Positions 13,374-36,190 are shown, counted from the first letter of the stretch. The stretch is DNA of 64,000 nt from IMGVR_UViG_3300042455_001086:124001-188000, one strand, 5' to 3'. The notes: generated by a model not told the origin, from the sequence alone. A program made the numbers and translations.

Positions 13374-14603
13374 CTATTTTTTGAAATTGTAGGAAGTTTG
13401 AATTGGTCTTTTACCATACTTTTTTTCCATAAGTTTCTGGTGTAGATCCCAATCTAATATTGATTCATTTGTTTGTTCCTTTTCATCCGGAATCAATGAA
13501 TAAATTTTTGATATTTTTTTCATAAGTTTTGTTGCAACATAATTAAATCTTTCACATTCGTCTTTGAAGAAATCCAACTCTCTATTTTGGTATTTGGTTA
13601 TATGATTTATAAATTTATTCCTAACTTTTTCTTTATTTGGATTTATTTTCTCTCCACCACCCAATAGTTGTGCCATAAACCCATCAAACATACTGTTAAT
13701 CTTTTCTCGTTGTGAATAAAAATAATTATCAAAATTTTCAACTTTAGTATTTACTAAATTAACATATACCAATCTAAGCACCATTTTTATTTTTGTTTCA
13801 TCATCAACATTTGTTTCCATTCCAGCGTGTTCTAATAATCTATCAACCCTTTCCATTTCATTATACAAACTTTCAATCAAATAATCAAATGAAAAATTTT
13901 TAATATCTTGTAATTCTTTATATGCCGTATCATTTGTTATAAAATCATAAAACTGTTCTTTTGTAATACCTTTCTTTAACATTCTAGTTGAGATCTCAGT
14001 TGGTCTTACCAGATTTTCGGTCATTTGAATAAAATAACTGTATCTCATAAACTTATTTAAGATTGGTATTCCAAAATTTAATCTACCTGATGAGTACGCC
14101 TGGTAATCGGCAAGATCGCCTACGAATCCTTTTGTTTTTTTTGTTCTATCGTATTTGTGTTTTAATTCGTGAGCCATAACTGAAACTGTATGTGCTTCAT
14201 CTTCTTGGAATTTTTCTAATATTTCCTCTGGTTCCCACATTTCTGCCGCAACAAAATTAATGTGTAATATTAAAGTTTTATTTACCGGTGAAATCTGCAT
14301 GAGTATAGCATTATCAAAAATAAATTCGTTTGAGACACCCATCGCCGCTATTTCTGGTTTTCCATCGTAATCTTCAACTTCTTGGATTTCAACTATAACT
14401 TTGATATGATCTATTGTTATATCTGAAATTTGTAATTCTTTATCTTCAATATCAAATTCGTATTCTATATCATTTTCATTTATTGATTTTAACTTTTCTA
14501 GAACAATACTATATAGTTCTTCGGCCGCTTCCATAATTCCTTTTGGAACACCAACAGCTTCTGTGATTAGTCTTAATTGATTTTCGGTTATTAGGATTTT
14601 CAT
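13374..14603 (-). CDS. putative virion-packaged zincin-like metallopeptidase
   Basis: HELKH (HExxH) with downstream E; N-terminal MKILITENQLRLITEA; TATTTAT upstream. Confidence 0.6.
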   Translation of the reverse strand: MKILITENQLRLITEAVGVPKGIMEAAEELYSIVLEKLKSINENDIEYEFDIEDKELQISDITIDHIKVIVEIQEVEDYDGKPEIAAMGVSNEFIFDNAILMQISPVNKTLILHINFVAAEMWEPEEILEKFQEDEAHTVSVMAHELKHKYDRTKKTKGFVGDLADYQAYSSGRLNFGIPILNKFMRYSYFIQMTENLVRPTEISTRMLKKGITKEQFYDFITNDTAYKELQDIKNFSFDYLIESLYNEMERVDRLLEHAGMETNVDDETKIKMVLRLVYVNLVNTKVENFDNYFYSQREKINSMFDGFMAQLLGGGEKINPNKEKVRNKFINHITKYQNRELDFFKDECERFNYVATKLMKKISKIYSLIPDEKEQTNESILDWDLHQKLMEKKYGKRPIQTSYNFKK

Positions 14604-14629
14604 AATAATAAATATATTGGAGTTATAGT

Positions 14630-15283
14630 TTATCCAACAACACCAACTAAATCATCCAGGTGGTGATCTCCAGACATATCGGACCCAACTGGTCTTTTAT
14701 CCATAATTTTGATTATTTCATCAATACTATATGGGTCCAATCCATTTCCATCAACACCAACATCCATTTTTTTACCATTACCGAATTTGGCTTCTCGTCC
14801 AAGGTGTGAGTGTCCGTGTAAATGGATAACACCTTTGTTAAGACCATTCCAACTTTGTAATGGATAATGACATAAAACAAAGTTTCTGTCATTTATTCTA
14901 ACTTCCAAGTAGTGATTTACACTTAAAAATCTTGATTGGATATTTTCTTTGTTATTAACTATATGTTGGTCGTGATTACCAAGTATTAGATGAATGTTTT
15001 TACAAATCAATCTTTCTAAGAAAATACCAATATTCTCAAACCCACCAAATGAAACATCACCTAACATAATCAATGTATCGTCCTGACCCACCATATTGTT
15101 AATTCCATCTACCAATCGTTGGTTCATCTGCTCGATAGTTTGAAAATCTCTTGTTGAATCAACTGGGATTTTTCCATCTTGAGTTCTCCAATTCGTCACA
15201 CCACGACAAATATTTTGGTGTCCGAAATGTGTATCGCTCACTATAAACACTTTTCCTATTGTTTCTAATGTTTTAAATTTCAT
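14630..15283 (-). CDS. calcineurin-like metallophosphoesterase
   Basis: SDTHFGH, LGDV, GNHD, CHYP, HGHSH. Confidence 0.9.
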   Translation of the reverse strand: MKFKTLETIGKVFIVSDTHFGHQNICRGVTNWRTQDGKIPVDSTRDFQTIEQMNQRLVDGINNMVGQDDTLIMLGDVSFGGFENIGIFLERLICKNIHLILGNHDQHIVNNKENIQSRFLSVNHYLEVRINDRNFVLCHYPLQSWNGLNKGVIHLHGHSHLGREAKFGNGKKMDVGVDGNGLDPYSIDEIIKIMDKRPVGSDMSGDHHLDDLVGVVG

Positions 15284-15294
15284 AGTTTTTATCT

Positions 15295-16257
15295 TTAAGG
15301 TAAATCATCTAAATAATTATAATCTTCATCTAAATAATTATAATCTATGGTATTATTTAATCCTATCGTTGCACTCGATAGTCCTAACAATTCTTTAATC
15401 CTACCAAGTTGGATATTTCCAGTTGTACTCGGTTGAGGATTACTTATAACAATATCCCCATAATTCGCGTTTCCAGATATGGTATGTCCATAAAAATGTG
15501 GATCATTTGTTAATATTCTATCACTAATTGGGTAGTCAGCTATTTTTCTTACACTTTTCACATTATCACCCCAACCAATTAAATCTCCAGTTGTCTTATC
15601 CCTTTGTAGTTCTTTTCTAATTTTTAAAAACAATTCATCCGGAATAAAGTCAATAAACATTGGATCAACTTCTCTATCTTGTTGATCCCAAGCTTGGAAC
15701 TTTTCATTTCTAAACTCTCTTGAGAATGCGATTTTTGTATCCGTTTTTTTATTTAAAACATAAATCAACCTATGTGTTGTTAAATATTGATTCCAATATT
15801 TTTCTTGTGTTACACACCATTTTGTGTTTGTACCATATACTTTAGATGCTTCAAAACTTAATGGTGTTAGAATAAACCAGGTTTCATCTTCGTGAATATT
15901 TAATATTTCTTTTTCAATTTTTTTTCTGTTTTCAATTTCTTCGGCGACTTTAACGGCTTCGTTTAATTCTAAAAAATTTTTGTATTGACTAATATCTTTA
16001 ATTTTAATTCTATTTGCCTTTGAATGTCTTTCAAATTCATTTAGAGTTTCAACCTCACCGGAACCAAATAGGAATATACCCATATATCCCATAAATTCAT
16101 CTTTGTTAGAACTATAATAATCACTATCTCTTTTAAAATTCTTAATTAAGAACTCTGTATATTTGTAAGAATCCGTTGGATCCAAATGTGAAATAATATC
16201 AATTAGTGATATGTTCAAATCCGGATGTTGTTCTTTTAATCTGTCTAATCTACTCAT
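15295..16257 (-). CDS. PcfJ-like 'TKWC'-motif protein (paralog 2)
   Basis: PLSFEASKVYGTNTKWCV; KYTEFL like KYTQFL of paralog 1. Confidence 0.7.
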   Translation of the reverse strand: MSRLDRLKEQHPDLNISLIDIISHLDPTDSYKYTEFLIKNFKRDSDYYSSNKDEFMGYMGIFLFGSGEVETLNEFERHSKANRIKIKDISQYKNFLELNEAVKVAEEIENRKKIEKEILNIHEDETWFILTPLSFEASKVYGTNTKWCVTQEKYWNQYLTTHRLIYVLNKKTDTKIAFSREFRNEKFQAWDQQDREVDPMFIDFIPDELFLKIRKELQRDKTTGDLIGWGDNVKSVRKIADYPISDRILTNDPHFYGHTISGNANYGDIVISNPQPSTTGNIQLGRIKELLGLSSATIGLNNTIDYNYLDEDYNYLDDLP

Positions 16258-16646
16258 AATTTTATACTAAAACGATTTTTCATTTGTTCTATCTTATCTT
16301 CTGGAACATTGTGTTCGTTGGTATTTCCGTGACGATTTTCAACAATTATAGTAAAAACTTTATATCCAAATTCTTTTGCTAAATCAAAATATGGTGTCAT
16401 CTCCCATTCTTGTGTAAAGGTGTTTGAGACAACAATTTTTTCACGAGCAACGGCCATATCGGTTTTAACCTTATCTAAACACCAAGTATGAGCATTTTTA
16501 ATTTTTGTCCCATCAAATTTATATTCACCGGTATTTGGATCAATAAAATACATATCAGCTTCATAATGTTTTCCACCTAAAGTTTTAGCAAATGTTGATT
16601 TTCCAGCACCACAAATCCCGCGGCATATCACAAGTATTTTTTCCAT
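16254..16646 (-). CDS. P-loop kinase, AAA_33/polynucleotide-kinase-like
   Basis: GICGAGKST, EADMYF, VSNTFT, HNVP. Confidence 0.85.
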   Translation of the reverse strand: MEKILVICRGICGAGKSTFAKTLGGKHYEADMYFIDPNTGEYKFDGTKIKNAHTWCLDKVKTDMAVAREKIVVSNTFTQEWEMTPYFDLAKEFGYKVFTIIVENRHGNTNEHNVPEDKIEQMKNRFSIKL

Positions 16647-16679
16647 AAAACAAAATTAAAAAAAATATCTTATAAAAAC

Positions 16680-16764
16680 AAGAAAAGGAACCATTTCTGA
16701 TTCCTTTAATTTGGGTCGACATTGAATGTCAACTCTCCACCACCTTGTTTTGATAGAACAAGGA
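16680..16764 (-). other. three-hairpin 3' element with terminator
   Basis: CCTTGTT/AACAAGG and GTTGACAT/ATGTCGAC hairpins, then AAAGGAA/TTCCTTTT. Confidence 0.4.
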
Positions 16765-16766
16765 AA

Positions 16767-17039
16767 CTACTTTGTAACCAACGCCTCAATCTTACTTTTA
16801 ACCTGTTCGGTTATTGATATTTCTTTTGTGTTTGTAACTATTATACAATCACCCAATGTTTTTGCTGGTATATTCACATAAAATGTATCTCCATTAAAAA
16901 AAGATAAATTCTCTTTTAATTCAACACTTGCATGAACCATCTTCAAAAATAATTTGAATTGTGTCTGATCCATAAATGTTTCATTTAGTAATTCACCAAA
17001 GGTTTCGTGTAATATTCTTATGTTAAATCCTATTTTCAT
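16767..17039 (-). CDS. hypothetical protein
   Basis: trimmed to MKIGFNI after promoter box 17044-17051. Confidence 0.7.
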   Translation of the reverse strand: MKIGFNIRILHETFGELLNETFMDQTQFKLFLKMVHASVELKENLSFFNGDTFYVNIPAKTLGDCIIVTNTKEISITEQVKSKIEALVTK

Positions 17040-17074
17040 ATCACAAATATAATGAACTTTTTGATATAAAACAA

Positions 17075-17112
17075 AAAATCTCACAAATTATATTACTAAT
17101 CTATGAGATTTT
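17075..17112. terminator. hairpin terminator
   Basis: AAAATCTCA...TGAGATTTT inverted repeat. Confidence 0.6.
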
Positions 17113-17186
17113 AAATTATTACCAACAAAATAAGAAGGATATGTGGTTTTTTTGTGTTTTATAAATACTATGAAATTCACAAAAAG

Positions 17187-17470
17187 TCAAAAATTTTTCA
17201 AAATTTCCATCATATTTTTTGTTTTTTTTGTCTCCGGAAGGTCATTTTTAGTAAAATACCAATAAGATTCAAATTTTTTTTATCAATTTTCAAATGCGTT
17301 TCTTCCTTAAATTCTCTAACAGCAGCATCAATTGGTAATTCATCTTTATCCATATGTCCAGATGGTATAGACCATTCCAATGGTAAAGATTCGTTTTTTG
17401 ATCTTTTACACAAAAGTAATTTATCATTATATTTAACAACAACTCCGGCTATTTTTTTTAATTCAGACAT
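17187..17470 (-). pseudogene. NUDIX hydrolase, internally deleted/frameshifted
   Basis: Nudix box PSGHMDKDELPIDAAVREFKEET; C-terminal YFTKNDLP segment in another frame from ~17258. Confidence 0.7.
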
Positions 17471-17489
17471 AAGATATATTTATATAAAT

Positions 17490-17837
17490 ATGGAGATTTT
17501 ACTTAATAATAATCTGTTGAATGTAAAATGTGTAATGAATTCAAAAGACACTCAAAAAGGAATGATGGGTAGAAAATTTTCAAATGAATTTGATGGGATG
17601 TTGTTTATTATGAATGATAAAGAACACTCATTCTGGATGAAAGACTGTATCATACCATTAGATATTATTTTTATCGAAAATAATAGAGTTTCTAAAATAC
17701 ACCATAACTGCAAACCTTGTAGGCAAGAGCCTTGTAAAAGATACAAAGGTAATGGCGATATGGTTTTAGAGGTTAAAGGTGGTTTCTGTAATGAGTATGA
17801 TATTGAGATTGGTGATATTCTAACTTTTAACGATTAG
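17490..17837 (+). CDS. DUF192 family protein
   Basis: KGMMGR..GMLF..FWMKDCIIPLDIIFI..VLEV; start trimmed to MEILLNN after TATTTAT. Confidence 0.85.
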   Translation: MEILLNNNLLNVKCVMNSKDTQKGMMGRKFSNEFDGMLFIMNDKEHSFWMKDCIIPLDIIFIENNRVSKIHHNCKPCRQEPCKRYKGNGDMVLEVKGGFCNEYDIEIGDILTFND

Positions 17838-18054
17838 ATTTTAATATATCAATATGGTGCTGTAAATACCAAGCGGCTTTTTCCAAATCTTGTATTTCTT
17901 TATCCGGATCTTTCTTCCCGGCTCTTGAAATGTATTTTACCGTGTTGCCCAATGAAAACCCAAGATTCCAAGCATCAATCACCTTTATGGCTTCATAAAT
18001 GTTCGTTTCTCCACCATAATGATTAGGATGATTTACCTGTTCCTTATTTTCCAT
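17827..18054 (-). CDS. DUF3310 family protein
   Basis: VNHPNHY...GNTVKYISRAGKK...DLEKAAWYL. Confidence 0.85.
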   Translation of the reverse strand: MENKEQVNHPNHYGGETNIYEAIKVIDAWNLGFSLGNTVKYISRAGKKDPDKEIQDLEKAAWYLQHHIDILKSNR

Positions 18055-18146
18055 TTTTTTGTTTAAGTTCATTTACGATTCTTCTAATCTCTTCACCCAA
18101 ATCATAATCGTTAGGAAATTTTTTTACTAATTCAATAAGTTCTTTC

Positions 18147-18923
18147 TCATTCATCTTGTTCTGTTTTAACACTTTTATAATATTCAACTATTTTTTTCTG
18201 TTCGATATAAGAAATTAGTTTTCTCTTGAACAATGGTAATAAAGTTTCTTCTAAAGGAAAATCACCATTACTTACCATTTCAACTACTGATAATTTCTTT
18301 TTATCTTCCAATAAACTAAATGTAGATATTATTCTTGAGGGAGTCAAATTATTTCTTTCTCCATCATAAATTATTTTTGTGATTAACTTATTTTCCGGTG
18401 ATCCTTTAGCGACTGGTTTTTTTTCATATTCCCAAACAATAATTCTTTTGTTTTTCTTATCATTAAAATACATAAAACCAGAATCATTTATAATATTTTC
18501 TTTGTTTTTTTTAACAACCAAATAAATCTTATCAAAAACAAGTTCCCAAACAGATTTGGCAATATTAAAGTATTCAATCATTCTTGGTGTTGTATATGAT
18601 AAAATTTGGATAAATTCTTCATACTCGTCCTTTGTCATTTCTGGAACATCTTTAATCTTTAAATCTTTCACCAATAGTTCATCGTCAATTGAAGAAAATC
18701 TTTTGTTTGTGTATAGAATTTTTTTGTCTTTTACAAGTGTTTGAACATTTGCCAAATGTAATGCAAGTTCAATAAATCCTGGGTATAATTCCAAATTATC
18801 TAGTTTTTCACCCATTTTTTGGAAATAAGAAAGTAATTTATATTCTTTGTGTTCCTTGTCAATTGGTTTTTCAAACATCCATTCGGTGTTCATTAAAAAT
18901 TCTATCTTCTTTTTCTTTGCCAT
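18147..18923 (-). CDS. hypothetical protein
   Basis: 258-aa ORF. Confidence 0.8.
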   Translation of the reverse strand: MAKKKKIEFLMNTEWMFEKPIDKEHKEYKLLSYFQKMGEKLDNLELYPGFIELALHLANVQTLVKDKKILYTNKRFSSIDDELLVKDLKIKDVPEMTKDEYEEFIQILSYTTPRMIEYFNIAKSVWELVFDKIYLVVKKNKENIINDSGFMYFNDKKNKRIIVWEYEKKPVAKGSPENKLITKIIYDGERNNLTPSRIISTFSLLEDKKKLSVVEMVSNGDFPLEETLLPLFKRKLISYIEQKKIVEYYKSVKTEQDE

Positions 18924-18961
18924 TTGGAATAATAATAATCATATAATATTTTCAGTAAATA

Positions 18962-20473
18962 TTAGTCGGTTCTCATTACAACAAATTCTTTATCACCGAC
19001 ATCAATCATACTATATTGTCCGTCGTATGAACTCAAAGTTTCACCATAATCACTATCTCTAATCAAATCGTCTTTTAGTCGATCCTTGTCAATATAATTG
19101 TAAAGTTCATCACCACCAAAACCCATTTCATCTAACCAATCAGCAGGTCTTCTCCTTATTTGGTCCAAATAATCTTCAACAGCTTCTTCAATATCATCAT
19201 CACTTGGGTCACCATCTGGATTATCTTTTATTTCTTCAATCTCATATTCAATATCTGATATTCTACTATCTCTATCGTCTTGATGGTCTTGTGTGTCCTC
19301 GTCGTCATATATTTGATTGGGATCTACTCTTACACCATCTTTATCTAAAAACCAATTACCACCTTCTTCATAATATTGAAACCTATTACCTTCTTCATCT
19401 TCAAAATCAAAAACTCCACCATCTTCTTTTGTTGCATGTTGAATTGGAAATCTTACACCAGTATTTTCAAGAATATATTTTTCCATTTCAAGTAGCCAAA
19501 TTTCTTCTTCTTGGTCACTACTTAATTGTTTTTCAACATTATAAGACTCTGGTTCTTCATATATCCAATCTCTTACTGTGTCTTCCCAACCTTCGGCTAA
19601 AGCGTCTCCATCTATATAATAAGATAGTCGGTCTTTACTGATATAATGTTCTGGATTCTCGACCCATTCTTCGTAGTAATCCTCCATAGCGACATCAGCT
19701 TCAGATTCTGTTCCAACGGTATATTCATAACCGGTTGATAAACATTCAAAACTATCCATTCTATAGTTAGTTCCACTCGGATAGAAATCATAAACATCGG
19801 ATTTTCCTGAAATTAACTCATCTCTTTCTTCTTCAAGTTCTAATTGTTTATTTGTAATCTCATCAAATTTTTCACTATACTCTTCATCATCTAGGTTCAA
19901 ATTTTGTTGTTCTTCTTCAAGTCTTTGAATTTCTTCTTCAATTTCTTTGACACTATCTCTATCATCGTCCGTTAAACCACTAACATCACCTCTTTCCATC
20001 GCATATAAAAAGACGGCATTTGCTCTTAATCCTTCATCATCTGTATTGGCCAGATTCCACACATCATTTCTTCTCCGTTCTTCCTGTTCTCTATATTTTT
20101 CTTGTTGTATTCTTCTTTGGACTAAACCATAATAAGGTGTGTCCCAATACCTTTTACTTCCGGTAACTTCGGTGTTGTCAAGATTTTTTATTTTAGTGTA
20201 ATTAACACTTAAATCACCCTCAATTCTAATTGATCCAAGATCTATTAAATTATTACTATCAATACCGTCTAATTTTAAACTACCAGTTACAACAATTTTT
20301 TTATTTTTAAATTTTGACATTTTTGGAATTAAATGTGCATTATATCCCACATGTCTTAAAAGCATTGTATATTCTTCTGGTGTAAATCTCACTTCCTCCA
20401 CTTCTTGTTCTTTAATAATATCCTTAACTAATTTAATCAAATTTGATTCTGTAAGTCTTAAAATTCTTTTCAT
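18962..20473 (-). CDS. acidic putative head-packaged protein with short LRR-like stretch
   Basis: MKRILRLTESNLIKLVKDIIKEQ N-terminus; GSL/GDL..TKIKNL repeats; TATTTAT upstream. Confidence 0.7.
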   Translation of the reverse strand: MKRILRLTESNLIKLVKDIIKEQEVEEVRFTPEEYTMLLRHVGYNAHLIPKMSKFKNKKIVVTGSLKLDGIDSNNLIDLGSIRIEGDLSVNYTKIKNLDNTEVTGSKRYWDTPYYGLVQRRIQQEKYREQEERRRNDVWNLANTDDEGLRANAVFLYAMERGDVSGLTDDDRDSVKEIEEEIQRLEEEQQNLNLDDEEYSEKFDEITNKQLELEEERDELISGKSDVYDFYPSGTNYRMDSFECLSTGYEYTVGTESEADVAMEDYYEEWVENPEHYISKDRLSYYIDGDALAEGWEDTVRDWIYEEPESYNVEKQLSSDQEEEIWLLEMEKYILENTGVRFPIQHATKEDGGVFDFEDEEGNRFQYYEEGGNWFLDKDGVRVDPNQIYDDEDTQDHQDDRDSRISDIEYEIEEIKDNPDGDPSDDDIEEAVEDYLDQIRRRPADWLDEMGFGGDELYNYIDKDRLKDDLIRDSDYGETLSSYDGQYSMIDVGDKEFVVMRTD

Positions 20474-20555
20474 ACAATAATAAATACTTAAAACTTTACA
20501 AATATGAATATATCATAATATTTATAGATAAATAAACTTGTAAAAACAAATCATT

Positions 20556-20702: not shown

Positions 20703-20768
20703 TTTCCTTTGGCCAAAGAAAAATTAAAGGTGGAAGTAATTTTCCGCTTTTTTTTATATTTATAAAAT

Positions 20769-21890: not shown

Positions 21891-21943
21891 AACTATTTAG
21901 ATATTTAATTAAAAATCATATTCATTATAAAAAATGATGGAAT

Positions 21944-24098: not shown

Positions 24099-26054
24099 TT
24101 AAAAATCAGTTGGTCCTTCACTAACACATTGATCGGTAATATAATCTGGGAAGTTTGGTGACCACAACTCATCACCAACAATTAAATATTGTGCCAATTC
24201 TTCTGGCACATTCTTAATGTCCAAACCAGAATTTCTTTTTGATATAAAGGTCAAACAAGGACAATTAAGTAGTGTCACAGGTAGTGTTTTTAATTCACGA
24301 CAATTTGTTATATTCAAGAAAGATAATTCTTTACATTCACCAATTTCTTCAGGAATTGATTTAACAATATTAGTAACAGAAAGTGTATATAAATTTTTAA
24401 GCCTACCGATCGTTTCAGGGAGTTCAATATAAATCTCATCGTTTGATTTGTTTTCTATTGTAAGCATTGTTGTATTTTCCGGTATTAACTCAAAAACTTC
24501 TCTAAATCCAAACATTCTGGCATATTTCGCATTTGGGTCACTTGGATAAATGATTTGAATAAACCCTGTGTTAAAATTTTCAATTTCTTTTTTGTATTTT
24601 GCTTTCAAACTTTTTAAATATGGTCTCATTTCTCTACTCATAATAACTTCCATATTATTTTCACTTAAATCTTTCAAGGATTTTGTAAGCAATTTTTCTT
24701 TTTTCTTTGATACATAATATGACATAGCACTTGGTGTAAGGACTCTAACCATTCCAGCGCTTAATTCATTTCCAAGTCCAATGTATTTCTTTTGCATTTC
24801 TTCTGGAAGATTCTTAAATATTTCATCCCCATTTTGTGTTGATTTTAAATCTGGGCTTCTTAATTCTAACCACATTTCAACTTCTTGGTAACCACCAAGT
24901 TCAGTTATAGGATCTGTAGTTTTTAAATTATAAGACTTATATTTTTGCATTTTATCTTGATCCTCATCAGTAAATGGTTTTCCTTCCAAATATTTTTCTT
25001 TATCTTTAAGAACTGGAATTTTACTTAAAATCTCACTCCAAGGAATAACAGTAGATCCGGCATATCTTCCAGAATTAGAACCATCGGCTAACCTCTTTTC
25101 GCCCCACTTATCAACAAGAATAACTGAAGCGTAATTTAAATCTGATTCTGGTAAATTTTTGTTGATGATATAATAAAGTGTAAGATTTTGATTTAATCTA
25201 TAATTGTAATAGTAATTTGAAGCACCCTCCCAAGATGTACACCATCTTCTATCTGGTGCAAATTTCTTTCTAATGTTAATACATTTATGTTTTTGATCTG
25301 GCGCAAAGATTAATACATTATCATCCTCATATGCAATATCAACATCGCTTGTGTCAACTTCAGGAACATCATACTCACTTTCTTCCATTGGTGTATAACC
25401 ATCAACAGCATGTTCAAATTCATCAAATGTCATAAACGCACTTAACTTCATATTGATTGGAAATAAGTTGTAGTGTTTTACAAATCTTTTTGCTCTCGGT
25501 AAAATTACTGTCATAACATCCTCTTCCGGTAATTGATCGTGGAATTTTTGTGCGATTGCAACAATAAGTTCATTGACACCTTGGTTATTAAATTTTGAAA
25601 AGTATCTTTCAACCAAAGAATTTAATTCTGCCGGAGTATAAGTTGTAACTTCTTTCTTAAATTCTTTTAATTGTGGTAATTGTGTTTTAATTTCAAAAAA
25701 CTTCTTGATATTTGTTTTTACTAATTGTAAATCGGTTCCTTTATATTTTTGGATATAGTCTTGAACCATATCTTCAAGATTCTTTTTACTTTTTTGTTTT
25801 GTTGCCTTATCTTCAATAAGTTTTTTAAGTTTTTCGTATGTATGTTTAAAAATGTCTTTGTCTTCATTTGCAAACGCACTTTTAAATCTTTCAAAGTCGG
25901 CAATATTTTTTCTTATCATTTCTTCAGAATCTTGAGTTTCTTTAGAAAATTTATCTACTAACTTTTTAATTGTGGATTCTGGGTATTCCAATAGAATTTT
26001 TTTAGTGTTAGCATTCTCCTTAACTACATTTGATAATAGGTTGATTAATTCCAT
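24099..26054 (-). CDS. 'WC'-motif domain plus C-terminal leucine-rich repeats, putative virion protein
   Basis: DRRWCTS..NYYYNY..LYYII; LRRs LPETIGRLKNLYTL / IPEEIGECKELSFL / LPVTLLNCPCL. Confidence 0.75.
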   Translation of the reverse strand: MELINLLSNVVKENANTKKILLEYPESTIKKLVDKFSKETQDSEEMIRKNIADFERFKSAFANEDKDIFKHTYEKLKKLIEDKATKQKSKKNLEDMVQDYIQKYKGTDLQLVKTNIKKFFEIKTQLPQLKEFKKEVTTYTPAELNSLVERYFSKFNNQGVNELIVAIAQKFHDQLPEEDVMTVILPRAKRFVKHYNLFPINMKLSAFMTFDEFEHAVDGYTPMEESEYDVPEVDTSDVDIAYEDDNVLIFAPDQKHKCINIRKKFAPDRRWCTSWEGASNYYYNYRLNQNLTLYYIINKNLPESDLNYASVILVDKWGEKRLADGSNSGRYAGSTVIPWSEILSKIPVLKDKEKYLEGKPFTDEDQDKMQKYKSYNLKTTDPITELGGYQEVEMWLELRSPDLKSTQNGDEIFKNLPEEMQKKYIGLGNELSAGMVRVLTPSAMSYYVSKKKEKLLTKSLKDLSENNMEVIMSREMRPYLKSLKAKYKKEIENFNTGFIQIIYPSDPNAKYARMFGFREVFELIPENTTMLTIENKSNDEIYIELPETIGRLKNLYTLSVTNIVKSIPEEIGECKELSFLNITNCRELKTLPVTLLNCPCLTFISKRNSGLDIKNVPEELAQYLIVGDELWSPNFPDYITDQCVSEGPTDF

Positions 26055-26147
26055 AATTTGTTTTTACTATAAATATTATAACCAAGTAAAAAAATAACTA
26101 TTTATTATTTATATGTCAATTTAAAAAAAATTAATTACTTATTTGTT

Positions 26148-28879: not shown

Positions 28880-28880
28880 C

Positions 28881-29069: not shown

Positions 29070-29238
29070 TTTTTTTAGCTTCTAATATTTCAGCTCTAAA
29101 TGTTTTTAACAATTCTCGTAATTCTTGTGCTGAGGTTCTTGCTCTTGTTCCGGCAGATTTGTTTCCTTTTTCAAAAAACTTTGTTGATTCTGCTGATATT
29201 GTCTCAACCAATGTTTTAATTTTTTCTAAAGTTTCCAT
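29062..29238 (-). CDS. histone H1-like (Hc1 family) DNA-binding protein (not in ORF track)
   Basis: 58 aa with EKGNKSAGTRAR signature. Confidence 0.8.
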   Translation of the reverse strand: METLEKIKTLVETISAESTKFFEKGNKSAGTRARTSAQELRELLKTFRAEILEAKKND

Positions 29239-29289
29239 TTTTAAATTTTTATTTGTTTATTAAACTATAAGATATGGTATGATTCGCCT

Positions 29290-29766
29290 TTAGTAAATAT
29301 TAACGGTCATATTTTTATCAAGGTTCTTATATATCGTCAATATAAGGTCTAAATCAGATTGTGTAAATGATTGTTCTAAATCAAAAACATCTCTAAAAAA
29401 CTTATCTATTGATTCTCTTATTTTTTTTTCTTTTTGTTTGTAAAATATTTCATCAAAAAATGTTATGAAATAATCATAATGATCACCATCCGGTTCAAAA
29501 CTTATGTTTTCTTTTTTGAAATCTTCCAATAATTGGTCCCAACACCAGTTGAAATGATTTATATTATCTTCTTCTGACATTATTGTATTGGTTTCGTCTT
29601 TACCTTCAAAACCAAGGTATGTTGATGTTACTTTAAGGTATAATGAATTACAAAAGTCATAGTATAACTCCATTTTTTCTGGATAGATATTATTCATTTT
29701 CATCCAAATATCAACATCCTCTTTTTCTACTTGTTTTGTAATATAGTTAAAAAAATTATTCTCCAT
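29290..29766 (-). CDS. hypothetical protein
   Basis: 158-aa ORF. Confidence 0.75.
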   Translation of the reverse strand: MENNFFNYITKQVEKEDVDIWMKMNNIYPEKMELYYDFCNSLYLKVTSTYLGFEGKDETNTIMSEEDNINHFNWCWDQLLEDFKKENISFEPDGDHYDYFITFFDEIFYKQKEKKIRESIDKFFRDVFDLEQSFTQSDLDLILTIYKNLDKNMTVNIY

Positions 29767-29817
29767 AAACTATTAATTGTCTATGGAGAATAATATCATA
29801 GTTAAATTATAAGTAAA

Positions 29818-31146
29818 TTATTGTGTCGCTCTATCGTAGTTAATAAGTTTTTGGATTTTTGAAAACTCTTCTAAAACAAGATTTCTTCTTTTATCTAAAT
29901 CTGATTCTAGTTTAATATTAACACCAGATCCGGAGTTTTCGCCAGTACCATCCGTTATAGGTTGTTTTGATTTTCTATATGCGGCCATCTTAGCTTTACG
30001 ATATTTCTGATCTTTCATTTTCTTACTCAATTTTTTACCAAGATCAGTTTCTTCGGCATTTGCCCACTCCGGGTTATTTCCGGTTCTTGATGAACCTTCA
30101 ATATTATCTTTTACCCATTTTTCGTCATATTCAATTTCATCCGGAACCAAATTTTCCATTCCTGGTCTCATATAGTCATCCAAGAATTCTTTACCATCAT
30201 CAGACATTGTATATTTTTTTGTTTTCATTTTTTCCAACTGTCCGTTTCCTTTTGGGAAATGTTTTGGGTTTTCCTCATAATCACCTTTAGAACCGTCTTT
30301 TAAATAATCACCCATTTTCTTTTTAACTGATTTTAAGTAATCATCGTTTTCTTTTTTGGATTTTTTCACAGCTCTTTCATACTCACCAAGACCTTTTGGT
30401 GTTTTTCCTTTACTAATATTGTTTTGTTCTTTTAAAACAGCTTTTTCAATAATATCTAAAAGTTTTTCCTCACTTACAATAAATCCTTTTCCTCCCACTT
30501 CTAATTGGTATTTAACCTCTGAAGATTCGTTATTTTTTTGTTCTTTTTCAACGATACTAATAATTAACTGATCCAATTCAGACTCAGACAAAATAGTTTC
30601 TTCACCATCAATCTCCAAATTATACAATACAGATTCTTTTACTGGGAATTTTTTACCATCCAAATCAAAACTTTTCTTACCTTCTTTTTTTGCCATTTTC
30701 GCAGCATAAGTGAATTCACTACTTTCTTCCATTTCTTCGTCTAATTCCAACTCGTAAATAGCCTCATCACCTTCTTTTCTTAATTTATCAAAATCGGCTT
30801 TTGTTAATTTACCAAATGGTTTTGCTTTATCTAATTTCTTTTGACCACCATATAGTTTTTCAAGAACTTCACCTTCTTTCATTCCACATTCTGAACATTC
30901 GCCTTCTTTCATTTCACTACCACATTGTTCACAAGTTTCACCTTCACTCATTTCCTTACTACATTGCTCACAAGTTTCACCTTCTTTCATTTCACCACCA
31001 CATTGCTCACAAGTTTCACCTTCCTCAACATAATCAAATGATTCACCTGGTTTATTGAATTTCAATTTTTCCATAATATCATTTGTTTTATCTTCAAGAG
31101 TCTCGTTTAATATTTTGTTAGTTATTTTTGCAATTAAATTTTTCAT
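29818..31146 (-). CDS. putative prohead core/internal protein with CxxC repeats
   Basis: four EGETCEQC-type repeats; E/K-rich; internal LSESEL...KEQ motifs. Confidence 0.6.
   Translation of the reverse strand: MKNLIAKITNKILNETLEDKTNDIMEKLKFNKPGESFDYVEEGETCEQCGGEMKEGETCEQCSKEMSEGETCEQCGSEMKEGECSECGMKEGEVLEKLYGGQKKLDKAKPFGKLTKADFDKLRKEGDEAIYELELDEEMEESSEFTYAAKMAKKEGKKSFDLDGKKFPVKESVLYNLEIDGEETILSESELDQLIISIVEKEQKNNESSEVKYQLEVGGKGFIVSEEKLLDIIEKAVLKEQNNISKGKTPKGLGEYERAVKKSKKENDDYLKSVKKKMGDYLKDGSKGDYEENPKHFPKGNGQLEKMKTKKYTMSDDGKEFLDDYMRPGMENLVPDEIEYDEKWVKDNIEGSSRTGNNPEWANAEETDLGKKLSKKMKDQKYRKAKMAAYRKSKQPITDGTGENSGSGVNIKLESDLDKRRNLVLEEFSKIQKLINYDRATQ
30885..31025. repeat. 39-bp tandem repeat encoding EGETCEQCxxEMK
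   Basis: three near-identical units plus a degenerate fourth. Confidence 0.75.
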
Positions 31147-31168
31147 CTTTACTTTTTTATTATAAATA

Positions 31169-31849
31169 TCATTTATTCTTTCTTTTTACAATTTCTTTGT
31201 AAATTATTTCTTTTATGAAATCTTCGTGAATATCCATTTTTTCTGAAAGATTGTTTATTACTTTTTTAATAGTATCGTTTTCAAATATTTTAAGGGCTTT
31301 AATATCACCTTGATTACAATAAGGAAATTTCTTACATTTTTTTTTAACCTGGACGAATTTACCACCCGGAATTTGTGTTTTAGATTTTCCTCTCCAATCT
31401 TTCTTACTAGTTGATTTAGCCCAAGCGGCCGGAGTTTCATAAGAACCAGACGATGATGATGAGGTTGCTTCCTTTGCTTCAACTTTCTTTGGTTCTTCAC
31501 CAGAAAATAGAGGTGCAGAATATGCACCAGCTGAAGATGCACCAGTCGATTCTTTATTTTCTTTTCTTCTATTTATTTTTTCCAGAATTGAAGTTAAAAA
31601 TTCTCTTAGTTCTTCTGGGTTTTTAAGAAATTCTTTAATTTTTTGTTTTATTCTAGTTCCTGATAATTTTTTATTTTTAACCAATTTTAAAATATCTCCC
31701 ATATTTTTTGGGTCATTAAGATATTCTTCCGGATTTTTATGTGTATCCTCCTCACTTAAACTTTTAAGTGCTTTTGTTCTAGCTTCTTGATTTCCAGCTG
31801 TTAAACTAGAAACCATTTGTTGTAATTTTGGTTTTATTGGGTCTTCCAT
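31169..31849 (-). CDS. putative virion protein
   Basis: duplicated E(S/A)T..SS.G.Y..P motif. Confidence 0.65.
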   Translation of the reverse strand: MEDPIKPKLQQMVSSLTAGNQEARTKALKSLSEEDTHKNPEEYLNDPKNMGDILKLVKNKKLSGTRIKQKIKEFLKNPEELREFLTSILEKINRRKENKESTGASSAGAYSAPLFSGEEPKKVEAKEATSSSSSGSYETPAAWAKSTSKKDWRGKSKTQIPGGKFVQVKKKCKKFPYCNQGDIKALKIFENDTIKKVINNLSEKMDIHEDFIKEIIYKEIVKRKNK

Positions 31850-31850
31850 T

Positions 31851-32258
31851 TTATTTAAAAACTAAAGCGTATGTTAATCCAACTATAATTGAGCCACCAA
31901 CTATATCTATAATTATATGTTTTGTCTTAATTTTTTTTATTTCACTTCTTAAACTTTTATTTTCCTTATCTAATAATTTAAATTTTGATTCGGTTAGTGA
32001 TATTATTTGATTATTTTTTTTGTCCTTTTCTTCTAGGATTGAAATTATATCGTTGTTTTTGGTTATTTTCGTCTCCAATTGAAAAATTTCATTAATATAA
32101 GTTTCCTCTTGTTTCTTTAGTCGATCAAACTCATTTAAATCAAGTAAAATAGACTTACCAACTCTAGCTGGTATATTCAAGGTTGTTGAATCAACATTTT
32201 TTTGTGAAAACAAAAATGTTGTAAGACAAATAAAAATAATGTTTAAAATATATTTCAT
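31851..32258 (-). CDS. coiled-coil membrane protein (spanin-like)
   Basis: signal peptide, coiled coil, C-terminal TM; near amidase. Confidence 0.5.
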   Translation of the reverse strand: MKYILNIIFICLTTFLFSQKNVDSTTLNIPARVGKSILLDLNEFDRLKKQEETYINEIFQLETKITKNNDIISILEEKDKKNNQIISLTESKFKLLDKENKSLRSEIKKIKTKHIIIDIVGGSIIVGLTYALVFK

Positions 32259-32259
32259 A

Positions 32260-32613
32260 TTAATAGTTATATCTTTTTTTAAGTGCCGAATCAATTTGTC
32301 TGGCATCATAGGTCAAAATCAATTCTTTTTCAACCTGGAAATAATTGTTTATTGTTTTTCTTTCATTTTTAATTTTGAAAATAGCAGAATCAATTTTTAA
32401 AATATCTTTCTTGTAGTTTAAGATTGAACTATCCAATTTTTTTTGTTGGCTTTTTAAATCGTTAATTTTTAAATCCAGTTGTTCTAATTTATATTTTAAC
32501 AATTCAGATCTATCTTCCACTGGTGTAAAAGCTCTAATTACAAGAACAATCAATAGGATAATTCCAATTGACTGAATAATAAATTTGAAATTATGTTTAA
32601 AAAAATCTTTCAT
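32260..32613 (-). CDS. TM-anchored coiled-coil protein (spanin-like)
   Basis: N-terminal TM then coiled coil. Confidence 0.5.
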   Translation of the reverse strand: MKDFFKHNFKFIIQSIGIILLIVLVIRAFTPVEDRSELLKYKLEQLDLKINDLKSQQKKLDSSILNYKKDILKIDSAIFKIKNERKTINNYFQVEKELILTYDARQIDSALKKRYNY

Positions 32614-33212
32614 TCGGTTGGGGTTTTCTTTCGGCTTGCGATTATTTTGGACCATTTTGTTTTAAATTTCTCATAATATTTTTTCAAATCAACAAGAAAA
32701 GCAAGGTATTCCTCATCAATTTTTGTCATTGTTCCATTTATATAGACACCATTTTTTTCACCAATAGTATAGAAAAATTCAACATCAAGTTCGGTTATTT
32801 TTCCAGACCATTCAACATTGTTTTCATATAAATTAAGTTTATTAAAATCAACAAGTTCAGAAACTTCAACAACAAATTCATCCATAGTTTCTTGGAAAGC
32901 TCTTTTATCTTCAGTTGTTAATTGTAAATCTTTACTTTCCTTGCTATGTATTACCATAATACCTCCAGAAATTCTATAAGCTTTCTTTTTTTCTGACTTA
33001 TTTGATTTTTCTTCATCTTCCTCATTATCAGTTTCGGCTGTCTCATACTCTTTTGTTACCCCTTCAATTTCTTTTTCAACATCTTCTTGTTCTGTAAGTA
33101 ATTTATAATTGTTAATAATTTGTTTTGACTCACTTTCAGAAATTTGGGTTTTAAGAGCTTTTCTTGTTGCCTCCAATAATGTTTTAATTTCTTCGTATCT
33201 ACTCATCTTCAA
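32610..33212 (-). CDS. putative virion protein
   Basis: ISESESKQII...LLTEQ motif. Confidence 0.65.
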   Translation of the reverse strand: MKMSRYEEIKTLLEATRKALKTQISESESKQIINNYKLLTEQEDVEKEIEGVTKEYETAETDNEEDEEKSNKSEKKKAYRISGGIMVIHSKESKDLQLTTEDKRAFQETMDEFVVEVSELVDFNKLNLYENNVEWSGKITELDVEFFYTIGEKNGVYINGTMTKIDEEYLAFLVDLKKYYEKFKTKWSKIIASRKKTPTE

Positions 33213-33795
33213 TTTTTTTTAAAAAATATTCAAAATTAAATGATGGGTTTAAATCTGTGGAATCTGAAAAGAAATTACTTCTAGTCAAAATACCATTTGT
33301 TTTTTCCGCACCATTTATTTTGGTGTTATGTCCAACAAATTTTTTCTCAATATTAAATTCTGTAATTAATTTTTTACATAAAAATATTGTAGAATTTATT
33401 TGTTCTTCTGTGTAAGTATCCCAAAAAATAAAATCTCTCCATTTTTTTTCGTATGGCTTACCTTTATAAATACTTCCAATCCAGTTAATGTATCCATTTT
33501 TTAATGGTTCTTTTTGCAACCATCCTAAATTTTCTAAACAAATCGTGATTGCGTTTTTATCTATTAACTTACTATTAAATATTTTAGATGTTTCTTCTTG
33601 GTTCAATAACTCCAAAATCTTACCTTCTTTATCTATAAAAAAATTTGGGATTTTATCGTATTTTCTATTTCCACGATATTTTAAGGCTGTAAGATATTCT
33701 TCGGCCAAACGAGAAGAATGTAGGAGTATTATTTGTTTTTTATTTTTATTTATACCTTGACCTAAAAAATTTCCGTATTTTATTATTTTAGTCAT
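33199..33795 (-). CDS. N-acetylmuramoyl-L-alanine amidase-like (Amidase_2 fold)
   Basis: IILLHSS, FFIDKEGKI, ITICLEN, YTEEQI, TDLNP; later Zn ligands look divergent. Confidence 0.7.
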   Translation of the reverse strand: MTKIIKYGNFLGQGINKNKKQIILLHSSRLAEEYLTALKYRGNRKYDKIPNFFIDKEGKILELLNQEETSKIFNSKLIDKNAITICLENLGWLQKEPLKNGYINWIGSIYKGKPYEKKWRDFIFWDTYTEEQINSTIFLCKKLITEFNIEKKFVGHNTKINGAEKTNGILTRSNFFSDSTDLNPSFNFEYFLKKIEDE

Positions 33796-34858
33796 TAGAT
33801 TTTTTATAAACCAATCTTTTTATGTTTTGATTAACTTCTTCACCCTTTTCTTCGTTTGTTGGGATCCAGGATTTTTGTTCTGTTATATTCAATGGTTCTC
33901 TTTTGATTTCAATTGTTGGCATATCAACTACTTGGTCGGTACTTGGTCGGTACTTGGTCGGTACTTGGTCACTTTCTTGGTCACTTTCTTGGTTACCCTC
34001 ATCTACTTGGGGGGTAGTTGGGGGGTGGTTGGGGGTTGGTTGAATATTATCATCGTCCTTTTTATTCCCCTTAAACGCTTGGTTTGTTGCAATAACCAAT
34101 GTTATTGCCAATGGATCAAAAACAAAAATAAGAATCAAAATAAAAAGATTTGCCGTTCTTTTAATGTCCCAATTCAAAACCTCACTTAAATACTTTATGG
34201 TTCCCAATTCACTTCCTTCAATTTCCTGAGATTCCATATTTAATATCTCAACATCTAGATTTGTTATACTGTCATTTAAATTATCAATCTTTTTTGAAAT
34301 TGTATCTCTTCTTATTTGTGCATCTTTTAATTGATTTTCAAATGTCTTTCTATTGGCATTATTTGCTTTTGTTATGATTTGACCGGTCTTTCTATCAACT
34401 GATTGTGTGGTCGTATTATTTGATAAACCATCTCTTAATTTTGTAATATCACGATCCAAAGTTTCTTTTTCCTTGGTTAATTCATCTTTAATTTCTTCAA
34501 ATCTGGTTTTTTTAAGTTCAACATTTTTTACTTTTTTTCCACTGATTTCAAGTTTTGCAATATTCTGTTGGAAACCGGTACTTAATAAACCATAAATCCC
34601 AAGTGATGTAATGATTGAAAGTGTTACGAGGGCTGTTGTCATATATATTTTTAAAACACCATATACTTCGTCCCACTTATCGTGAAGATAAGTTGCAATT
34701 GCGAGTTTTGAGATTTCAAGAAAACTACCCATTATAATAACAGGAATTGCAACACCTGTAAAAACCACAGATAATCCAATAACACTATAGTAGGCCGCAG
34801 TTCCGGAAAGACCTAGCGCACAAAATAATAAAAACCAAGGTAATAATTTATCTTTCAT
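33788..34858 (-). CDS. multi-pass membrane protein with coiled coil
   Basis: three N-terminal TMs, coiled coil, IFVFDPLAI TM. Confidence 0.75.
   Translation of the reverse strand: MKDKLLPWFLLFCALGLSGTAAYYSVIGLSVVFTGVAIPVIIMGSFLEISKLAIATYLHDKWDEVYGVLKIYMTTALVTLSIITSLGIYGLLSTGFQQNIAKLEISGKKVKNVELKKTRFEEIKDELTKEKETLDRDITKLRDGLSNNTTTQSVDRKTGQIITKANNANRKTFENQLKDAQIRRDTISKKIDNLNDSITNLDVEILNMESQEIEGSELGTIKYLSEVLNWDIKRTANLFILILIFVFDPLAITLVIATNQAFKGNKKDDDNIQPTPNHPPTTPQVDEGNQESDQESDQVPTKYRPSTDQVVDMPTIEIKREPLNITEQKSWIPTNEEKGEEVNQNIKRLVYKKSND
33930..34042. repeat. 11-nt and 12-nt tandem repeats, including a G-tract array
   Basis: (ACTTGGTCGGT)x3, (CTTGGTCACTTT)x2, (TGGGGGKTRGT)x3. Confidence 0.8.
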
Positions 34859-35339
34859 AATGAACAATTATATTCCCTTTGACAAATTTTGTAAATGACT
34901 TTAGATTTACAAATTCCTCAACAACTAAATCACCATCACTTTTTATGATAATTAATTTATTTTCTGGTTTATATGATAAAGTTTTTGGGTATATTATTGA
35001 AGTTACAATATTGAGGGAGTATGTTCCGTTTCTATTTAGATGTGGTACAACAATAAAATCAAAAAGATTTAAATAATCCTTAACTAATATACTTGTTTTA
35101 TTACCACCTTCTAATATTGTTTTAGCAAGCTCAGAAAAAACATCCGAGAATTCAAAAATAACATCACCAATAGTATTAACATCTACTCTACCAAATCTTG
35201 TATTAGGTGCTGTGGTTTCTTGAGAATGTATTGTTGCCACAACCTTAAATGTGTCACCATCTTCATCAGTGAAATCTCCCAAATTTATTCTTGCTCCTTG
35301 TTCAAGTATTATGTTTTTTAAAACACTTAATAGTTCCAT
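34848..35339 (-). CDS. putative head-packaged protein
   Basis: MELLSVLKNIILEQ N-terminus; TATTTAT upstream. Confidence 0.7.
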   Translation of the reverse strand: MELLSVLKNIILEQGARINLGDFTDEDGDTFKVVATIHSQETTAPNTRFGRVDVNTIGDVIFEFSDVFSELAKTILEGGNKTSILVKDYLNLFDFIVVPHLNRNGTYSLNIVTSIIYPKTLSYKPENKLIIIKSDGDLVVEEFVNLKSFTKFVKGNIIVHYER

Positions 35340-35352
35340 ATGTTATAAATAT

Positions 35353-35505
35353 AAAACCCCCCGTAAAAACGGAGGGTTCAATGGATATTTAACCAATTAA
35401 GGTAGGTTTATCCAACCCGAATCTTTGCTATCACTTGATTCTCAGTGGTCAGCTTTACACTAGGAGGGCTGACATTCCTTGTTTCTGTGTTTGTGAACTA
35501 CATCA
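35353..35505 (-). ncRNA. candidate sRNA A
   Basis: promoter TTTG-N20-TATCTTTG (35512-35543), terminator 35353-35378, GC-rich, hairpins, no meaningful ORF. Confidence 0.6.
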
Positions 35506-35569
35506 ACAATACAAAGATATGTTCTTTTTTTTAATCTACCAAATAATTTTTGTGGTATTTATTATAAAT

Positions 35570-36190
35570 ATGAAAAGTTTAATTAGGAGAATTTTAAAAG
35601 AGGAAGTTGAGACTTTCAGTATTAAAGAGATTGATTTACCAGATTTTCTTTTTGAAAATTTATTAACTGAAGGAAGGTCATCAATGCCTGTTGATAAAGA
35701 GCTTGTTGAAGAATTAAATAAATATGTTAAAGAAAGATACAACTGGCCACCAAATATAAAAAATGAATGGTGTAGCGATATAAAAGAAAAAGAATTACCA
35801 AATGAAAAAATTGTAAAATATTCTTGTTCTAAAAAATTTGAGATTAAAGTTTCTGATCATTGGGCGCAAAGACTTTTTAGGCCAGAAGAACCAGAGCATC
35901 AACCTGGTGGTAGATTATCACATTTAAATATATTATACCCTAGAAAACACGAAGGGTTGAATCTTTTTTTTGATTATAAAGATTCAATTAATGAATATTT
36001 TACAAATGCAACAAGTTGGGCACCTCCACAAACAAAAAGATTTTTACTTACTTTAGGTAATTATCAAGAAATTGTTGCGGTAAGAAAAGAAGGTAAAGGT
36101 CAGTATTACGCAGAATTTATAACACAAATAAAAGGAGAAAGATTTTTTGATACGGAAGATCTAAAAAAAACAATACGTTTATATCTATAA
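35570..36190 (+). CDS. putative head-packaged protein
   Basis: start trimmed to MKSLIRRILKEE after TATTTAT (35556-35562). Confidence 0.75.
   Translation: MKSLIRRILKEEVETFSIKEIDLPDFLFENLLTEGRSSMPVDKELVEELNKYVKERYNWPPNIKNEWCSDIKEKELPNEKIVKYSCSKKFEIKVSDHWAQRLFRPEEPEHQPGGRLSHLNILYPRKHEGLNLFFDYKDSINEYFTNATSWAPPQTKRFLLTLGNYQEIVAVRKEGKGQYYAEFITQIKGERFFDTEDLKKTIRLYL

Follow-up and report, generated by a model that had tools for sequence, protein, structure and literature searches.

Why should unrelated proteins of a phage begin with similar peptides? This question is raised by positions 13,374 to 36,190 of a 64,000-nt stretch of DNA, IMGVR_UViG_3300042455_001086:124001-188000 (the whole stretch is called the window below). 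For this region, a sequence-only reading had pointed out six genes whose products start with an amphipathic leader ending in I/L-x-E and are preceded by the word TATTTAT, and had proposed that the leader is a tag that loads diverse cargo into capsids. All six N-termini are present at the starts that had been given. The window comprises bases 124,001–188,000 of one virus record of 257,166 bp (30% G+C), and the analysis of the complete record indicated that the feature lies mostly outside the window and exceeds what had been noticed at its edge. The leaders most likely represent a large, so far undescribed, expanded version of the internal-protein system of phage T4 in a 257-kb lake-water phage.

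Iterated profile searches within the genome, applied to 326 crude open reading frames (ORFs), yielded 39 proteins, about 12% of the gene count, that fall into four leader families, with E-values down to 1e-21 and with matches that nearly all begin at residue 1. Family A (MKKIIRLTESDLTRIVKRVIxE) has 12 members, family B (MKIIITESQYxxLIxE) 10, family C (MKKIIITEEEKSRILGMH...ISE) five, and family D (MNLQESIRRILRE, with the short form MKxLIRxILxE) 12. The motif [ILVMF][ILV]-x-E is present in 32 of the 39 leaders, with the Glu at residues 10–29. Most members are encoded between 39 and 117 kb of the genome; the window contains three, the 409-aa, 503-aa and 206-aa proteins in Table 1. In families A and B, the fixed residues are written in several synonymous codons, e.g., TCN and AGY for Ser or AGA and CGT for Arg. 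Therefore, selection acts on the peptide rather than on the DNA or the mRNA, and an explanation at either of these levels was ruled out for the two families. The profile matches and the codon turnover establish families A–D as real, N-terminal leaders, with A and B under selection at the protein level. Family D is in part a recent tandem array, with nearly identical DNA at genome positions 83.9–88.1 kb. A relaxed search for internal leader copies in the genome stayed at the level of shuffled proteomes, apart from a single ORF (genome 87190–88128) with two family-D leaders, one at residue 1 and the other at residue 200. The latter also begins with Met, so that the ORF represents either a fusion of tagged genes or a nested start.

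None of the leaders has the uninterrupted hydrophobic core of at least 10 residues that characterizes Sec, Tat and lipoprotein signal peptides. By inspection, they are charged every two to four residues (e.g., LTESDLTRIVKRVINE), and they differ from the true signal-peptide-like N-termini of the same genome (e.g., MKTIFFIFTLFIVSFVNSQ). The cargos behind the leaders are mostly orphans, with five Pfam families among 42 proteins scanned. One cargo with a family-B leader (genome 94481–95479) combines PG_binding_1 and GH19 domains, an architecture seen in endolysins, and may act on the cell wall from within the virion, instead of or in addition to serving as the lysis enzyme. No evidence was found for the nucleases that the sequence-only reading had listed as possible cargo.

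To follow family A beyond this genome, its back-translated DNA pattern, in which the terminal Glu was left unspecified, was scanned over the IMG/VR contigs, and at least 119 stretches matched. The following counts apply among the matches listed. The motif is N-terminal in 134 of 138 instances, with a Met five to eight residues before the Leu, and all 131 scorable N-terminal leaders end in V-I-x-Glu. Behind these 131 leaders are 111 distinct cargos, whose median length is 107 aa and which belong to 81 unrelated families. Across 113 distinct instances, most leader positions have an entropy of less than 0.3 bits and the Glu has zero, and about 4 bits are reached from the second residue past the Glu. 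A word-based protein search agreed with these results, retrieving nearly identical leaders on unrelated proteins and an occasional second, internal copy. The complete genomes tested (257–321 kb, including the one studied here) have two to six strict family-A leaders each, all on the coding strand, and the reversed pattern had no occurrence; shorter contigs with the tag represent 25–34% fragments of such genomes. As judged from these matches, the tags are interchangeable modules across more than 80 cargo families. Two small IMG/VR proteins carry the family-A core at the C-terminus, ending in ..RIVKRVI(D/G)GK, without the Glu. A literature search for the motif strings returned nothing relevant.

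The fate of the leader can be deduced most directly from one cargo, g90526 (genome 90526–91473, outside the window), in which the family-D leader MNLKDSIKNILRE...TLVE is followed by Cys23. The structural model (predicted local distance difference test score, pLDDT, 83; predicted template modelling score, pTM, 0.84) has the alpha-beta-beta-alpha fold of the N-terminal nucleophile (Ntn) hydrolases, with the leader as a low-confidence helix outside the well-predicted body. The Pfam family AAT matched with 23.6 bits, just over the cut-off of 23.2, and structural alignments with NAAA, AAT, bile-salt hydrolase and penicillin V acylase gave Z-scores of 16–20 and started at model residue 23. In the superposition, Cys23 coincides with the residue that opens the mature chain of these enzymes, i.e., Cys2 of bile-salt hydrolase, Cys1 of penicillin V acylase, Cys103 of AAT and the start of the NAAA beta chains, and with residue 143 of acid ceramidase. 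In Ntn hydrolases, the nucleophile must be the free N-terminus. Because this applies to the catalytic Cys of g90526, its leader must be removed exactly after the Glu. All 116 orthologues have Glu directly before the junction (P1) and Ile, Leu, Val or Met two residues further upstream (P3), and the position between them (P2) is occupied by 14 different residues. This junction is preceded by a leader of family D in 44 orthologues, of family B in 13 and of other styles in 59; therefore, the leader classes are exchangeable. Four longer fusions of the hydrolase retain an internal leader-like stretch together with the same junction. As read from the alignment, selection maintains [ILVM]-x-E directly ahead of the catalytic Cys, which equals the published specificity of T4 gp21. 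We know of no self-cleavage requirement for a Glu with a hydrophobic P3. A cultured phage carries the junction as well: in Chryseobacterium phage MA9V-1 (OR050627), which encodes an S77 protease, a 40%-identical orthologue of the hydrolase reads MTSANNNEFLNE|C, i.e., ...F-L-N-E|C.

A protease of the required type is encoded in the genome. At genome positions 8–18 kb there is a head module in T4 gene order, with the major capsid protein (MCP) gp23 and the portal protein gp20 matched in profile searches at 246 and 225 bits, respectively. An S77 prohead protease of the gp21 type scored 80 bits in Pfam (cut-off 27); it is 35% identical to T4 gp21 and retains the ELNHP and SSRG(L/V)GS stretches, which we take to be the sites of the catalytic His and Ser. 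The module also encodes an acidic, scaffold-like protein of 499 aa and two small proteins at the positions of T4 gp67 and gp68; at the gp67/gp68 position, a 237-aa protein begins in the leader style with ..IENILTE|G. In the MCP, ...L-I-N-E60|A stands a short way ahead of the part that is aligned with residues 95–178 of T4 gp23; T4 has F-L-T-E65|A. The S77 protease was encoded in all five large leader-bearing genomes tested (241–321 kb). Among cultured phages, Flavobacterium phage immuto has the nearest capsid protein (41% identity), and a near-identity DNA search of the region against such phages had no match.

Within the window, three of the six genes thus named carry leaders of the families described above (Table 1), and for these three the sequence-only reading was right about the shared leader. 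The 409-aa protein has 1076 homologues. In 22 aligned orthologues (57–86% identical), the leader ends in ...L-(I/L)-x-E15, followed by an invariant AVGVP, and a five-residue insertion that lengthens the leader helix in orthologues leaves this junction intact. In the model of the protein (pLDDT 74), the leader forms a low-confidence helix (residues 7–17, pLDDT 55–64) before a well-predicted body. The body contains an invariant HExxH (H145, E146, H149), in line with the peptidase that had been suggested; the fold gave no such support, as Foldseek had no match in the PDB, a wide search reached a best Z-score of 5.3, and BFVD returned only uncharacterised phage proteins. A tblastn search with the protein had no match among cultured phages. 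For the 503-aa protein, Pfam and PHROG had no match, and for both proteins a protein atlas returned only viral hypothetical clusters. Altogether, Pfam and PHROG searches with the six proteins named gave a sub-threshold leucine-rich repeat (LRR) match and one weak PHROG match. The 206-aa protein was also matched (E = 3e-5) by an independent profile built from the leaders of the Ntn-hydrolase orthologues. Its start at 35570, and not at 35519, is correct because the longer ORF would contain the TATTTAT box and the Met at 35570 is where the match to the leader profile begins.

Table 1. Genes, leaders and TATTTAT boxes in the window (positions counted from the first nucleotide of the window).
Feature	Position	Strand	Support or remark
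409-aa protein, family-B leader	13374..14603	-	clade core gene; family-B profile E = 6e-8, residues 1-21
Leader of the 409-aa protein, residues 1-15, MKILITENQLRLITE	14559..14603	-	proposed cut after E15; orthologue alignment
TATTTAT box of the 409-aa gene	14608..14614	-	4 nt before ATG
503-aa protein, very acidic (isoelectric point 4.2), family-A leader	18962..20473	-	family-A profile E = 1e-12, residues 1-24
Family-A leader of the 503-aa protein, residues 1-22, MKRILRLTESNLIKLVKDIIKE	20408..20473	-	proposed cut after E22
TATTTAT box of the 503-aa gene	20480..20486	-	6 nt before ATG
651-aa core protein, LRR-like C-terminus	24099..26054	-	N-terminus MELINLLSNVVKEN..KILLE23, candidate leader only
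TATTTAT box of the 651-aa gene	26069..26075	-	kept upstream in 30/30 distinct orthologues
442-aa protein, Cys-rich repeats	29818..31146	-	N-terminus MKNLIAKITNKILNE15, candidate leader only
TATTTAT box of the 442-aa gene	31162..31168	-	
163-aa protein	34848..35339	-	N-terminus MELLSVLKNIILE13, candidate leader only
TATTTAT box of the 163-aa gene	35345..35351	-	directly 3' of a GC-rich hairpin and T-run
206-aa protein, short family-D leader MKSLIRRILKE11	35570..36190	+	family-D profile E = 2e-8
TATTTAT box inside the longer ORF	35556..35562	+	longer ORF begins at 35519
Sigma-70 family factor, phage-encoded	38232..39032	-	PF04542, 64.8 bits at 38652-38861

For the other three proteins, of 651, 442 and 163 aa, the shared leader did not find such backing. 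None of them matched a family profile, and they were also missed by a profile from the independent, F-style leaders of the Ntn-hydrolase orthologues. Two additional families, E and F, which were built from look-alike N-termini including these three, recruited nothing beyond their seeds and were dropped. A loose pattern of two hydrophobic residues, any residue and Glu at positions 8–32 is present in 12% of random 25-residue windows, and outside families A–D it was not enriched on genes with TATTTAT (13 of 66 versus 30 of 221, p = 0.24). In favour of the three, each has its own TATTTAT box, and a similar ..IENILTE|G is found on the protein at the gp67/gp68 position. Among 59 loci related to the 651-aa gene, ..LLE|YPEST and the upstream ATATTTAT are kept in 30 distinct orthologues, and a 46%-identical orthologue of the 442-aa protein retains ..ILxK(I/V)LNE(S/T)LE. 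Scans for related loci of the 442-aa and 163-aa proteins retrieved mainly nearly identical copies, and for the 163-aa protein only these. Tentatively, the three N-termini are candidate leaders that their sequences do not separate from chance. For the LRR character that had been assigned to the 651-aa protein, the match to LRR_14 scored 24 bits, short of the Pfam cut-off (40). In the 442-aa protein, there are several Cys-rich repeats built as GETCEQCG(G/S)EMKEGE and two internal stretches that resemble family A (ILSESELDQLIISIVEKEQ and IVSEEKLLDIIEKAVLKEQ); the leader profiles did not detect these stretches.

The second feature that had been ascribed to all six genes was fully borne out: TATTTAT is present on the sense strand 4–15 nt ahead of the ATG in each of them. 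The word itself is not over-represented in the window (55 occurrences versus 56 expected), and its placement is not random. Across the genome, a sense copy lies no more than 40 nt ahead of 84 of the 326 crude ORFs, compared with about 6 expected and 27 with an antisense copy. It is directly preceded by an A in 83% of the cases, and its spacing to the ATG peaks at 4–6 and at 11–20 nt. Among the 39 leader genes, 25 have TATTTAT upstream, 24 of them within 40 nt (odds ratio 6, p = 4e-7), and one has the host-type box TAnnTTTG, which is the −7 box of Bacteroidota promoters, precedes many small genes and marks a separate set of 38 genes. The terminase and scaffold genes are also preceded by TATTTAT. 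The leader genes therefore share the box of head genes, which bears, as far as the sequence can tell, on whether the motif could be equally common on early genes. TATTTAT is also found ahead of some non-structural genes, for a methyltransferase and homing endonucleases. In the window, the products of 36444–37277 (−) and 39634–40350 (−) resemble DNA methyltransferases by their N-terminal motifs only, and the second gene has the box, which is therefore not confined to structural and tagged genes.

The phage-encoded sigma-70 family factor is a candidate reader of the TATTTAT boxes. Because its gene lies downstream of a gene with a host-type TAnnTTTG box (39040–39573), a cascade may reasonably be proposed in which a host promoter leads to the phage sigma factor and this in turn to the TATTTAT genes. 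Between the divergent genes 17210–17470 (−) and 17490–17837 (+), two boxes stand back to back (17477–17483, +, and 17484–17490, −), and this pair at 17470–17490 looks like a compact bidirectional promoter. Leader genes often form stand-alone cassettes (e.g., 35345–35385, −), in which a GC-rich hairpin with a T-run is followed by ATATTTAT and, 4–20 nt further on, by the ATG. Mobile cassettes of promoters and stem-loops have been described for T4-type genomes (PMC2839356), and by analogy the hairpin and box cassettes could drive the shuffling of tagged genes. Two paralogues with classical signal-peptide-like N-termini (genome 74813–75439 and 76354–76773, +) lie on the opposite strand among family-C leader genes, and both are preceded by the composite box ATATTTATATTTGTAG, which holds both promoter motifs. 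Shine-Dalgarno sequences are absent ahead of the genes. Their absence and the TAnnTTTG boxes suggest that the host is probably a freshwater Bacteroidota species. In a search of sequencing runs, DNA of this phage was present in lake, pond, freshwater and soil metagenomes from 19 studies.

How does this system compare with known ones? A T4 leader reads MKTYQEFIAE. In T4, gp21 cuts after L/I-x-E, and leaders of 10–19 residues target the internal proteins to the core (PMC9026906); the internal proteins of T-even phages have only the leader in common (PMC3012670, PMC9026906, PMC12373910), and those with a known target, Ip1–3, all inhibit a host restriction system (PMC12373910). As with the capsid-targeting sequences (CTS) of IPI, IPII, IPIII and Alt, the short N-terminal leader is the sole common part of unrelated, mostly small proteins here, it has a hydrophobic-x-Glu end suited to a gp21-type protease, the head module is the same, and the cargo turns over rapidly. 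However, there is by eye no likeness to the T4 leaders beyond the terminal hydrophobic-hydrophobic-x-Glu, and the leaders, of 11–30 residues, form at least four families in one genome. At least 39 genes are tagged, compared with three in T4 and about 10 reported across the T-even phages, some of the cargos are large conserved core genes, the host group is different, and packaging is a prediction here. In the jumbo phages phiKZ, 201phi2-1 and SPN3US, a diverged homologue of gp21 also cuts many head proteins after Glu (PMC9026906, PMC5694885). Their sites are S/A/G-x-E, and these proteins are not known to have a targeting leader in common, whereas P3 is I/L/V/M in 116 of 116 cases here and the leaders form families, so that the phiKZ type does not apply. 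Encapsulin cargo peptides, which follow a similar principle, are short terminal peptides that direct diverse cargo into a shell of the HK97 fold. In contrast to the leaders, they are usually C-terminal, bind the shell and stay uncut, and they are not related to them in sequence. With the pro-sequences of penicillin V acylase, AAT, NAAA and acid ceramidase, g90526 shares the fold and the nucleophilic Cys directly after the leader. These pro-sequences are removed by the enzyme itself, and their P1 is not known to be a conserved Glu; unlike them, the junction of g90526 looks like a site for an external, Glu-specific protease.

These results can be combined into a mechanism. The leader genes would be transcribed from the phage-specific (A)TATTTAT, probably by the phage's own sigma factor. 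Their leaders of 11–30 residues, in which a short beta-like stretch (KIIxL) and a helix cap (TES/TEE) are predicted to precede an amphipathic helix ending in hydrophobic-hydrophobic-x-Glu, would bind the proteins to the scaffolding core during prohead assembly. The gp21-type S77 protease would then cut after the Glu and release the cargo inside the head, from which it would later be ejected along with the DNA. It seems fairly probable to us that the leaders are N-terminal propeptides that act like the capsid-targeting sequences of the T4 internal proteins; cleavage by the S77 protease, contact between leader and core, packaging and injection are steps that we infer. The genes for the 409-aa, 503-aa and 206-aa proteins fit this mechanism with good support. 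The capsid-targeting role that had been put forward for all six genes is thus in keeping with the S77, gp23, gp20 and scaffold genes, the [IL]-x-E ends, the modularity and the hydrolase junction, and it lacks such support for the remaining three.

Several observations weigh against this mechanism. Family A is conserved far past what a three-residue cleavage motif needs, and at least 39 different packaged proteins, with about 7,500 residues of distinct cargo, would be far above T4. The protein with PG_binding_1 and GH19 domains need not be in the head, and a few metagenomic proteins carry the family-A motif internally or, without the Glu, at the C-terminus. All tag-bearing genomes form one clade, and the co-occurrence with S77 is therefore not independent evidence. 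A tblastn search with a family-A protein had no match among cultured phages, no cultured phage was found with leaders A–D, and the search of sequencing runs found no RNA runs that hold this phage. Ntn hydrolases normally cut themselves, so that the leader of g90526 could be removed without the prohead protease, in which case the invariant Glu and the hydrophobic P3 need another reason. A predicted complex of S77 residues 18–205 with the first 45 residues of the 503-aa protein had a score of 0.00, which is evidence neither way.

The self-processing of this enzyme class and the endolysin-like cargo also lend some weight to a different role, in which the leader, as a removable pro-sequence, would keep its protein inactive, soluble or unfolded until autoproteolysis, a host protease or a cytoplasmic phage protease cuts it off, and the proteins would act late in the infected cell without being packaged. 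The T4 prohead protease is known to be active inside assembled proheads. The P1 Glu, hydrophobic P3 and free P2 of the 116 hydrolase orthologues match the site of T4 gp21 (PMC9026906), and a nearly invariant 22-residue tag on 81 unrelated families, mostly of proteins below the size of enzymes, is hard to explain as an inhibitor; we consider this role quite unlikely. It is likewise unlikely that the strand and helix are kept in the mature protein, as a module for docking, oligomerisation, nucleic-acid binding or membrane attachment that serves a common partner other than the prohead, with the Glu as part of the helix. The motif is amphipathic and basic, its conservation covers far more than a cleavage site, it occurs a few times internally or C-terminally (twice without the Glu), and a strand followed by a helix loosely recalls the start of ribbon-helix-helix proteins. 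However, a retained leader would block the catalytic N-terminus of the Ntn hydrolase, on whose orthologues the leader class is freely swapped. In addition, 134 of the 138 listed instances are at residue 1, conservation stops exactly at the Glu with no second conserved helix, and the models of both g90526 and the 409-aa protein place a low-confidence leader helix outside the body. Finally, the N-termini might have no common function and reflect the bias of an AT-rich genome towards Lys, Ile, Leu and Glu, limits that leaderless or short-leader mRNAs place on their first codons, and recent duplication of a cassette of promoter and start. The frequency of the loose pattern and its lack of enrichment on TATTTAT genes, the nearly identical DNA of the family-D copies, and an ATG that mostly follows the box by 4–20 nt without a Shine-Dalgarno sequence all agree with this, and it would cover the three unclassified proteins. 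Against it stand E-values down to 1e-21 within 326 proteins, when shuffled proteomes stayed at noise level, the synonymous turnover, and the retention of family A on unrelated cargo over many metagenomic contigs. As a general account it is very improbable; it is excluded for families A–D and stays for the three unclassified proteins.

If the leaders target proteins to the capsid, the genes whose products are delivered with the DNA can be recognized by a simple signature in an uncultured clade common in lakes. Since Ip1–3 inhibit restriction, the at least 81 cargo families behind a single leader family would be pre-sorted candidates for anti-defence and host takeover. The leaders could also be used to tag foreign proteins for the heads of Bacteroidota phages, a use to which the T4 CTS is put in E. 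coli. A further idea that follows from the Ntn-hydrolase junction is that enzymes may be inactive until the prohead protease frees their catalytic N-terminus. It is possible, and we put it forward tentatively, that a widespread clade of freshwater phages of 240–320 kb devotes more than a tenth of its genes to capsid-loaded, injected proteins that are addressed by at least four interchangeable leader families, and that some of the cargos (the Ntn hydrolase, perhaps also the PG_binding_1 and GH19 protein and the HExxH protein) are enzymes activated only by the prohead protease, i.e., zymogens in the capsid. In that case, the leaders would make hundreds of unknown families of injected effector or anti-defence proteins in uncultured phages searchable.

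A leader of similar style appears to exist in the cultured phage MA9V-1. The profiles of families A–D had no match in this phage. Several of its ORFs start with M(K/R)xFF(I/V)NE|A, one of them directly upstream of the S77 gene. By its sequence, this has the look of a targeting leader of the T4 style, undescribed so far, in a cultivable jumbo phage of a Flavobacteriia host; it resembles the T4 CTS in style, is shorter than leaders A–D and belongs to another family. For MA9V-1 virions, only SDS-polyacrylamide gel electrophoresis has been published (PMC10537231).

Three further observations concern the record as a whole. Both ends of the 257,166-bp sequence carry a perfect inverted repeat of 127 bp, which one would not expect in a T4-like phage and which may have arisen as an artefact of assembly. 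The large terminase gene (genome 19487–22492, 1001 aa) is over-long and may be interrupted. The portal gene (genome 14400–18422, 1340 aa) contains an intein-splicing domain together with an HNH endonuclease.

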